A stretch of 64,000 nucleotides of DNA from Lama guanicoe. Its lineage: Eukaryota. How positions within the stretch are numbered: position 1 is the stretch's first letter; each line of letters starts with the position of its first letter. The stretch is from the NCBI GenBank assembly GCA_013239625.1, contig MU056693.1:372001-436000 (forward strand), in the 5' to 3' direction. The notes under the pieces were generated by a model. It searched no databases. It was not told the DNA's origin and worked only from the letters and a program-made list of their open reading frames with translations. The translations under genes were made by a program, and so were the position numbers. Shown here piece by piece: positions 58,979-60,441 of the stretch.

Positions 58979-60441
58979 ATGGCCTGGAGCCGGGCGGCGC
59001 TACTGCTGCCGCCTCTGATGCTCCTGCTGCTGGCGACCCCTGTCCAGGTCTCCCCCGACTACCATTACTTCGGCGAGCAGGGCGAAGGGGACATCTGGGA
59101 GCAGCTGCGCCTGCAGCATCGGGAGAAAGGTAACCGCAGGCCGCGGGTATGACTGTGCGGAAAGGTGCCCCATTTTCCTACTTCACCAGGTGGCTGCAAA
59201 TAGACCCTCCTCCAGGGACTGCAAATCTCTGCCCAACTGCGCACTGGCGGCGCCCCTCTGGCTGGTTACTTTTCTCTGAGGCTTAGTTTTCTCACCTGTA
59301 AATTGAGATAGAGACTGTCTTTAAGCAGCTTACAAAGGAGACGAGACACGGGCAGGCAATAAATACCGAAGCAGACATACCCTTAAAGTTATGGGTAGTA
59401 CTGGGAAGGGCGGAGATAGAGAAGGAAGGGTGCAGGTAAACTTCTGAACTCAGAGAAGGCCCGGCTGAAGAAAGATAACCAGTGCAGCCAGATGCCAAGC
59501 AAAAGACGAAAATGTGAAGACTTAGGGGGAAGAGTGCGCCAGGGAGTCAGAACAGCAAGTGCCAAGGCCAAAGGCCTGACAGGGGAATGGAAAGAGGCCA
59601 GTATTGTCTGGCTGAGGCTTGGTGAGTACATGAGGTGTCAGGACTTTGTGAACCAGAGTTGGGCTAAGACCTGTCAACTCAGGCCTTATGGAGGGAGGAA
59701 TCAGTAAAAGAACAGTTGTAAAGAGCCTCTCATAAATGTTGCAGCTGCTTTGAAAATGATCACAATAATTGATTTTGTATTACATGTGAGCACATCGCCG
59801 GGGGCTTTAAGTACCTTCATTATGCCAGTTATGTCATTTAATTTACCACCTGACAACGCTGCTGGTCAGGTGACACTTTGTCCATTGGACAGACTCATGA
59901 TCACGCCCCTGAAGAGATAGGAGTCACCTTCAAATTGTGGACACCAAGTGTGTTGTACCACACTCCCAACTGGACAGGCAGGCACAGGTGGGAAGTGTTA
60001 TTTTGCAGTCTCTCTGGGCCACTCACCAGATATGTGAGCTTGGAAGGGCGGCTTGCTCTCTAGCCATGAGTTTCCTCACCTGGGACTAATGGGAAGATTA
60101 AATGAGATAATCTATGGTGGGGTACTGGCAGAGGCACAGCCTGGCAAACATGAACAGCTGTTATGTGTTAGTGTCTTTCTCCTCCTCCCTCCCTAGAGGG
60201 GGAGGGGATAGGTTCCCCTCTACCTGGCCCTCCATCCTTAGAATTGGGAGACTCTGTCCTTGGCCCGTGGGGAAAGTGGCGCTGTTTCTGCGACCTGGGC
60301 AAGCAGGAGCGCAGCCGCGAGGTGCTGGGCACAGCGCCGGGCCCGGTGTTCATGGACAGCGAGAATCTGGTGCAGGTGCGGCCCTGCCGGCAACAAGATT
60401 GTTCATCCTGCAAGCCAATCGACTGCGGCTGGAGGCCCTGA
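58979..60441 (+). CDS. THSD8: Small secreted thrombospondin type-1 domain protein, 116 aa
   Basis: Exons 58979-59129 (AAG|GTAACC) and 60242-60441 (tccatccttag|), phase 1, give [116 protein letters not shown]. It has a signal peptide, WxxW and RxR motifs and 6 Cys. Symbol assigned from the domain and its position between PRDX2 and RNASEH2A. Confidence 0.85.

Follow-up and report, generated by a model that had tools for sequence, protein, structure and literature searches.

The locus analysed here raises the question of whether a short two-exon open reading frame (ORF), located head-to-head with PRDX2 in the genome of Lama guanicoe, is a genuine gene and, if so, what type of protein it encodes and how it is related to its two neighbours. 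The preliminary description of the window (the whole stretch of 64,000 nucleotides that was analysed) had read this ORF as a poorly characterised, small secreted protein with a thrombospondin type-1 repeat (TSR), similar to THSD8. In order to establish its identity, we compared the translations of both exons with protein databases and found them to match, letter for letter, the RefSeq entry 'thrombospondin type-1 domain-containing protein 8 [Vicugna pacos]' (P0001, 116 amino acids). The exons were compared one at a time, and P0001 represented the full-length protein in the further analysis. Exon 1 is identical at 50 of 50 positions and exon 2 at 64 of 65, the sole apparent mismatch being an artefact that arises from a TTG read as a start Met. 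A word search with exon 2, submitted as part of the stop-free stretch 60172-60438, returned 38 proteins, with P0001 as the best match. Since the translations are identical to P0001, the proposed gene model coincides with the RefSeq annotation that already exists. The gene consists of the following parts:

58979..59129, plus strand: THSD8 coding exon 1 (151 nt), with the start codon, a signal-peptide-like segment (residues 1 to about 20-25), an acidic Tyr-rich segment and the first base of codon 51.
59130..60241, plus strand: THSD8 intron (1112 nt), with GT...AG ends, in phase 1.
60242..60441, plus strand: THSD8 coding exon 2 (200 nt), which encodes the divergent TSR-like domain (residues 51-116) and ends in the TGA stop codon.

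The two exons, their canonical phase-1 splice sites and the intact ORF of 116 codons that had been proposed can be read directly from the DNA. The ATG at 58979 lies in a good Kozak context (GGGCATGG), the end of exon 1 at 59129 is followed on the donor side by GTAACC, and exon 2 is preceded by a pyrimidine-rich tract and an AG at 60240-60241, and terminated by the TGA at 60439-60441. Together, the exons comprise 351 nt (151 + 200), corresponding to 116 codons plus the stop, and the codon split at the junction in phase 1 (G/AA) encodes Glu51. The GC and CpG contents fall within the intron. In the list of ORFs of the window, as was already remarked, the gene appears only as two unconnected fragments, with exon 1 contained in the ORF 58625..59152 and exon 2 represented by the ORF 60244..60441. 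An in-frame ATG at 58751 was also considered as a start codon and was rejected, as it is located inside the putative core promoter of PRDX2 and the RefSeq model begins at 58979.

THSD8 carries RefSeq, Ensembl and UniProt annotation (human THSD8, mouse Gm49661), and the mouse orthologue is listed as 'predicted gene 49661'. The literature search revealed no paper on the function of THSD8 and no mention of Gm49661, in agreement with the earlier statement that no function has been assigned. THSD8 appears in a horse gene list that reads RNASEH2A, PRDX2, THSD8, JUNB (PMC10378902). It is also mentioned in two versions of a human lymph-node atlas, where its function is not addressed. A 'thsd8b' in a Xenopus chemokine paper was rejected as a THSD8 record and regarded as a probable typographical error, because it sits beside cxcr4 and dars, a position that we take to be that of THSD7B. 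The gene at this locus is genuine, was read correctly and had been annotated before; no function has been assigned to it in the literature searched.

The protein contains a hydrophobic core at residues 7-20, with Kyte-Doolittle values of 2.0-2.5. This is its sole strongly hydrophobic stretch; the hydropathy analysis showed no second hydrophobic segment, the C-terminus included, which bears out the claim of a signal peptide as far as an N-terminal signal-peptide-like segment is concerned. No N-glycan sequon was found. Residues 26-50 form an acidic, Tyr-rich segment, and the motif singled out in the preliminary description is located at 26-38. All of the other listed motifs were found as well: WGKW at 60-63, RSR at 74-76, and six cysteines at positions 65, 67, 99, 104, 107 and 112. 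The computed pI is ~7.8 for the domain and ~5.3 for the mature protein.

We then asked how far the gene is conserved. Frameshifts or stop codons in orthologues had been named beforehand as evidence that would count against it; in the protein sequences compared, many of which are automated gene models and possibly biased towards intact ORFs, the ORF is intact in more than 60 mammals and its length varies by about 3 amino acids. THSD8 orthologues of 113-119 amino acids are present in all four placental superorders, and the identity of the camelid protein to other placental orthologues is 70-91%. Orthologues for which values of 74-84% were obtained share with it the length, the two-part layout and the neighbourhood. 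The human protein was included as one row of the alignments. An alignment of 35 sequences, nearly all of them from placentals (dugong, tamandua, sloth, primates, rodents, bats, carnivores and cetartiodactyls), contains 21 invariant columns, including all six cysteines, W60, W63, R74 and R76. Full-length spliced THSD8 ORFs were also observed on hundreds of short run-assembly contigs of mouse, rat and other mammals, which is indirect evidence that the two exons are spliced together. Among the sequencing runs listed for the camelid sequence, none is recorded as RNA.

Beyond this alignment, an exhaustive HMMER search of 1.84 billion representative sequences gave only 38 matches at E <= 0.001. The informative ones were THSD8 of rabbit, echidna and tammar wallaby and proteins of Ascaphus, Pleurodeles and Huso, with a second group from sharks, sturgeon and platypus; a further word search added relatives in skate, lizards, snake, turtle, tenrec and shrew. 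A metagenome scan with P0004 confirmed nothing. The skeleton W-x2-W-x-C-x-C ... R-x-R ... P-C-x4-C-x2-C-x4-C is common to the family, as can be seen in echidna, wallaby, frog, newt, sturgeon, shark, lizard, snake and turtle; the wallaby THSD8 model is devoid of a cysteine equivalent to C107. WxxW is present in 47 of the 48 family sequences.

A tree based on 66 domain columns, that is, on a short alignment with some long branches, divides the family into two clades, with support values of 91/82 and 95/92. One of them, 'THSD8 proper', consists of amphibian and mammalian proteins, and the other, 'THSD8-like' (95/92), of proteins of cartilaginous fishes, sturgeon, sauropsids and platypus; the placement of the Huso protein P0064 is unsure. 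The 'THSD8-like' paralogues (shark, skate, sturgeon, lizard, snake, turtle and platypus LOC103165267) share with THSD8 the skeleton, the signal peptide and the small size. They differ from it in having three Trp (WxxWQPW), RIRHF or RVRYF where THSD8 has RSRE, and a C-terminal tail of 45-60 residues that ends in a conserved SYDSLPVVDDxG.

These data bear on one objection to the gene, namely that the ORF, in a GC-rich CpG island, could be due to chance, or be a lineage-specific one in decay, with no functional product. Such a reading would draw on the fact that this GC-rich region contains several long overlapping ORFs in other frames, e.g. 60114..60554 on the plus strand and 60168..60797 on the minus strand. 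However, an ORF kept intact and at the same length throughout the mammals examined, with invariant Cys, Trp and Arg residues and with relatives across the jawed vertebrates, is conserved to a depth that rules out chance or decay. We consider this objection effectively refuted by the conservation, and its remaining probability negligible.

Having established THSD8 as a conserved protein-coding gene, we examined whether its second exon encodes a TSR, as had been proposed on the basis of WxxW, RxR and the cysteines. Ordinary domain searches did not assign the camelid protein to this fold: with TSP1_spondin (PF19028) it scored 16.2 bits against a Pfam gathering threshold of 41, and no match to TSP_1 (PF00090) was reported. 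Among 35 family members, sub-threshold matches were obtained by 7 to TSP_1 and by 4 to TSP1_spondin. The Suncus orthologue, at 21.6 bits, is at the TSP_1 gathering score and is the only orthologue to reach that cut-off. The check with TSP1 profiles that had been suggested earlier was therefore negative for the camelid protein and positive for its Suncus orthologue.

Profile-based comparisons were more informative. When the THSD8 family profile was run against the library of 1.84 billion sequences, a protein with seven TSRs was matched at E 2.2e-4, and hhalign aligned the family domain with those seven canonical repeats with a probability of 92% (P 6.5e-7). In this alignment C67 corresponds to the second TSR cysteine, GKQERSR matches GxQxRxR, and the last two TSR cysteines fall on C99 and C104. 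A profile search of the PDB gave only two matches, the TSRs of F-spondin and thrombospondin-1, both at non-significant E-values (0.3-0.9), and phmmer with exon 2 found nothing in the PDB. The WxxW of strand A (W60-G-K-W63) and the RxR of strand B (R74-S-R76) do not vary among placentals and hardly vary in the whole family.

The fold was then predicted with AF2. With the exon 2 query and an alignment of 49 vertebrate sequences, a model with pLDDT 83.9 and pTM 0.63 was obtained; a run on a shallow, placental-only alignment (pLDDT 51) was uninformative and was discarded. Foldseek returned no match at E <= 0.001 for the model, and its top matches were all TSR domains, the best being that of MIC2 (TM 0.69, rmsd 2.2 A). 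In an exhaustive structural alignment against 48,161 representative PDB chains, ranks 1-12 were occupied by TSR entries, ahead of fibronectin-III noise, and the best match was again the MIC2 TSR, with Z 4.3 and an rmsd of 2.3 A over 48 residues. Low Z values are expected for an irregular domain of 50 residues. As the absolute Z is 4.3 at most, the support for a TSR fold comes from the ranking and from the agreement between methods and not from the score. Read in this way, the structure-prediction check that had been proposed speaks for a TSR-like fold, and the THSD8 domain is predicted to adopt the three-stranded layered TSR fold.

The domain nevertheless departs from the canonical TSRs in several respects. 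We compared it with those of TSP-1 (TSR2/3), F-spondin (TSR4), MIC2, properdin, complement C6-C9, UNC5, BAI1 and semaphorin-5A. Shared with these repeats are the WxxW of strand 1, the RxR of strand 2, a layered, Cys-stabilised fold of ~50 residues, the GxQxRxR core and a C-terminal PC...C. The canonical layout of six cysteines (CSxTCG ... RxRxC ... C ... C ... C) was not found in THSD8, whose cysteines are arranged as C-x-C ... (no Cys after RxR) ... C-x4-C-x2-C-x4-C. Thus, relative to canonical TSRs, CxC stands in place of CSxTCG, the cysteine after RxR and its partner are missing, and there is an extra C-terminal CxxCx4C. Moreover, THSD8 has two Trp instead of three, and its repeat stands alone instead of being one of several domains in a larger protein. 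The POFUT2 O-fucosylation consensus CxxS/TCxxG is absent from P0001 and from all of the relatives inspected (0 of 48). This consensus is typical of TSRs without being universal, and the O-fucosylation site is used in TSR quality control.

Could the domain then be an independent small disulfide-rich fold, and not a true TSR, that only shares the WxxW...RxR pattern? The camelid scores far below the Pfam threshold (16 bits against 41 for TSP1_spondin), the empty phmmer search of the PDB, a best structural Z of only 4.3, and the altered cysteines (CxC in place of CSxTCG, the usual one after RxR missing, two extra at the C-terminus) would all be compatible with this explanation. On the other hand, independent methods converge on TSRs alone, both in hhalign and in the library-wide HMMER match to a multi-TSR protein; the Suncus score and the first twelve structural ranks point the same way. 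We therefore consider an unrelated fold very unlikely. The proposal of a TSR holds in the sense of a single TSR-like domain, for which the profile comparisons, the predicted fold and the WxxW/RxR pair argue; it does not hold for a canonical one, given the cysteine arrangement and the scores below the Pfam thresholds, and the WxxW, presented earlier as the C-mannosylation consensus, is only a candidate site for this modification. In other words, THSD8 is a TSR only in the sense of a divergent subtype, one that escapes the ordinary Pfam thresholds.

Two other protein groups deserve comparison. All of the 35 THSD8 sequences gave weak matches to PMSI1 (PF15322), at about positions 160-240 of its 315. 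The camelid protein scored 15.5-16.1 bits against a gathering threshold of 29.6, over positions 181-232 only, so that a local segment is shared, and the Suncus orthologue exceeded that threshold (30.7 against 29.6 bits). By atlas similarity, midkine/pleiotrophin were the nearest named clusters other than TSP (0.82), and 'Protein MENT' was listed at 0.77. PMIS1 (mouse Gm128, Protein MENT) is a sperm protein specific to the testis, and its knockout leaves mice fertile (PMC3395656). With some 300-350 amino acids, MENT/PMIS1 proteins are longer than THSD8, which has 116. A word search aimed at them returned no MENT protein. From this weak but universal partial similarity, THSD8 and PMSI1 possibly share a domain, which we regard as a lead only. 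Midkine and pleiotrophin are small secreted cytokines that bind heparin and consist of TSR-like domains. Like THSD8, they are small, Cys-rich and secreted (predicted in the case of THSD8), with a TSR-like beta fold (structural Z 2.2); unlike it, they have two domains, are strongly basic and are devoid of WxxW, and the sequence homology is not above noise. They may serve as the nearest functional analogy for the mode of action of THSD8, although as a weak lead.

Based on these features, the following mode of action can be proposed. The Leu-rich N-terminus would direct co-translational entry into the ER and would be cleaved around residues 20-25, to give a soluble mature protein of ~10.5-11 kDa without membrane anchor or N-glycan site. 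Its acidic, Tyr-containing N-terminal tail may be tyrosine-sulfated, and its second part would form one compact three-stranded TSR, in which W60 and W63 are stacked between R74 and R76. W60 is a candidate C-mannosylation site by sequence. Disulfides would hold the strands together, C65 and C67 presumably bonding with C99 and C104, as suggested by hhalign, with an additional C107-C112 loop; this map is a guess, because the cysteine pattern departs from both classical TSR groups. Since a lone TSR is without catalytic machinery, the most likely mode of action, by analogy, would be that of a secreted binding module, i.e. a small ligand or a protein that binds to the matrix or the cell surface, e.g. 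to sulfated glycans or a receptor. With regard to the locus as a whole, we consider it highly probable that it is the camelid orthologue of THSD8, a gene with two coding exons that makes a small, predicted secreted protein with a single TSR-like domain, likely a binding module.

On the PRDX2 side, the gene organization is as follows:

58063..58167, minus strand: PRDX2 first coding exon, the divergent neighbour, with its ATG at 58167 (lower boundary approximate).
58646..58978, no strand assigned: candidate bidirectional promoter, a CpG-island interval between a putative PRDX2 non-coding exon 1 and the THSD8 ATG.

The exon at 58063..58167 is taken to be that of PRDX2 from its translation and from the gene order in the horse list. 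PRDX2 is on the minus strand, 812 bp separate its ATG from that of THSD8, and both genes are arranged across one CpG island, so the head-to-head arrangement that had been described is correct. Upstream of the PRDX2 coding exon, the minus strand contains an acceptor and a putative non-coding exon with a GT donor at 58645, and farther upstream a TATA-like CATAAAAG at about 58736-58729. The distance from this putative exon-1 donor to the THSD8 ATG is about 330 bp, which is the width given for the shared promoter in the preliminary description. The interval 58646..58978 has a GC content of 0.70-0.76 and a CpG observed/expected ratio of 0.87-0.94. Given the head-to-head layout across the CpG island, a bidirectional promoter for PRDX2 and THSD8 is plausible. 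A scan for bacterial-type promoters and terminators, irrelevant at this locus, gave nothing.

On the other side, THSD8 is followed on the same strand by RNASEH2A:

61572..61698, plus strand: RNASEH2A exon 1, with its ATG at 61572 (exon end approximate), 1130 nt after the THSD8 stop codon.

THSD8 is thus located between the divergent PRDX2 and the co-oriented RNASEH2A, the RNase HII identity of the latter having been established through P0041 and P0115 (PF01351). No AATAAA or ATTAAA was found on the plus strand from 60441 to 62867, and the interval of 1130 nt between both genes contains only weak variants of the poly(A) signal. Several database proteins, mostly automated models, combine sequences of the two genes, and those from other species imply the same adjacency:

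P0115 (meerkat): THSD8 exon 1 joined in frame to RNASEH2A exon 2.
P0120 (pig): THSD8 exon 1 joined to sequence that precedes the RNASEH2A ATG.
P0048 (Logan contig protein with a pig-like exon 1): exon 1 joined, as in P0120, to sequence that precedes the RNASEH2A ATG.
P0037 (bat): donor within THSD8 exon 2, after Gln95.
P0112 (hare): donor within THSD8 exon 2, after Gln95.
P0041 (Przewalski horse): THSD8 exon 2 joined to later RNASEH2A exons.

Splice sites of the type used in these chimeras are present in the window, namely CAG/GTGCGG at 60375/60376 and TTTGCAG at about 61529. Furthermore, RNASEH2A intron 1 is in phase 1 in the window, so a chimera of THSD8 exon 1 with RNASEH2A exon 2 would be in frame here too.

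This raises the possibility that the THSD8 exons act mainly as RNA, i.e. as alternative upstream exons of RNASEH2A transcribed from the CpG island on the PRDX2 side, with the ORF being an upstream ORF or the first cistron of a read-through transcript. The want of a strong poly(A) signal between the THSD8 stop codon and RNASEH2A, the models of meerkat, pig, the Logan contig, bat, hare and Przewalski horse that join the exons of both genes, and the reading frame kept by the phase-1 intron are all in favour of such a role. It does not explain, however, why the exon 2 domain, with its six Cys, two Trp and two Arg, is conserved as a protein from sharks to mammals, which a purely RNA or upstream-ORF role would leave unaccounted for. 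Most of the chimeras are, moreover, automated models, and they lose either the TSR cysteines or the N-terminus of RNase H2A with its DEAGRG segment, so that they look like by-products. We therefore regard a mainly RNA-based role as unlikely and retain the reading of THSD8 as a protein-coding gene. The two roles are not mutually exclusive.

A broader view, which we put forward tentatively and which is possible more than it is probable, would combine both aspects. According to it, THSD8 would form the mammalian branch of a so far undescribed family, present in jawed vertebrates, of non-canonical, stand-alone TSR mini-proteins, characterised by CxC, CxxCx4C, the missing POFUT2 site and two ancient paralogue clades, and at the same time a transcription unit coupled to RNASEH2A, through alternative 5' exons or as an upstream cistron, and driven by the promoter shared with PRDX2.

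THSD8 represents a small, strongly conserved protein that has been named by domain prediction only, and it counts among the uncharacterised members of the mammalian secreted proteome. Its family can be traced to sharks and comprises two clades, and the O-fucosylation site is missing throughout it. RNASEH2A is an Aicardi-Goutieres syndrome gene, and if THSD8 shares transcripts with it, this would matter for knockout design and for the interpretation of variants at the compact PRDX2-THSD8-RNASEH2A locus.

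In the sequence upstream of THSD8 exon 1, towards its divergent neighbour PRDX2, the following features can be observed:

58729-58736, minus strand, TATA-like motif CATAAAAG
58645-58710, minus strand, putative exon 1 of PRDX2, short and non-coding, with CAG/GTATGA at its end
58559-58978, plus strand, open frame 5' of THSD8 exon 1, open upstream as far as 58562

The putative PRDX2 exon 1 lies approximately 25-30 nt 3' of the TATA-like motif on the minus strand, and the positions of these two elements therefore put the putative start of PRDX2 within about 270 bp of the THSD8 ATG. 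The open frame contains an in-frame ATG at 58751 (plus strand), 5' of the THSD8 start, and comparable N-terminal extensions are found in some THSD8 orthologue models (fallow deer, whales and dugong). Since the alpaca ATG at 58751 falls within the putative PRDX2 core promoter, it is probably not part of the THSD8 mRNA.

On the other side of the gene, neither AATAAA nor ATTAAA is present in the interval 60442-61571, which separates the THSD8 stop from the downstream gene RNASEH2A. Meerkat, pig, bat, hare and Przewalski horse have database proteins in which exon 1 of THSD8, or a portion of its exon 2, is fused to RNASEH2A sequence, and donor and acceptor motifs fitting such joins are present in the window at 60375/60376, ~61285-61290, ~61529 and 61911. 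Splicing from THSD8 exon 1 into RNASEH2A exon 2 would preserve the reading frame, because both introns are in phase 1. Elsewhere in the window, a run of 196 N (11811-12006) represents an assembly gap or a masked stretch.

Among the retrieved relatives, the tammar wallaby THSD8 model (P0042) carries a Ser at the position corresponding to C107 (NNCPSSSPGQC), and RRQ instead of RSR. These substitutions could reflect relaxed constraint in marsupials, or else a model or assembly error.

A paralogous "THSD8-like" clade comprises proteins of sharks, skate, sturgeon, sauropsids and platypus (P0069-P0073, P0077, P0081, P0082, P0085-P0089 and P0091), none of which is encoded in the window; no therian member was found among the retrieved relatives. 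The clade is marked by WxxWQPWVCMCD, by RIRHF and, at the C-terminus, by the conserved motif SYDSLPVVDDxG. A candidate relative is Protein MENT (PF15322).
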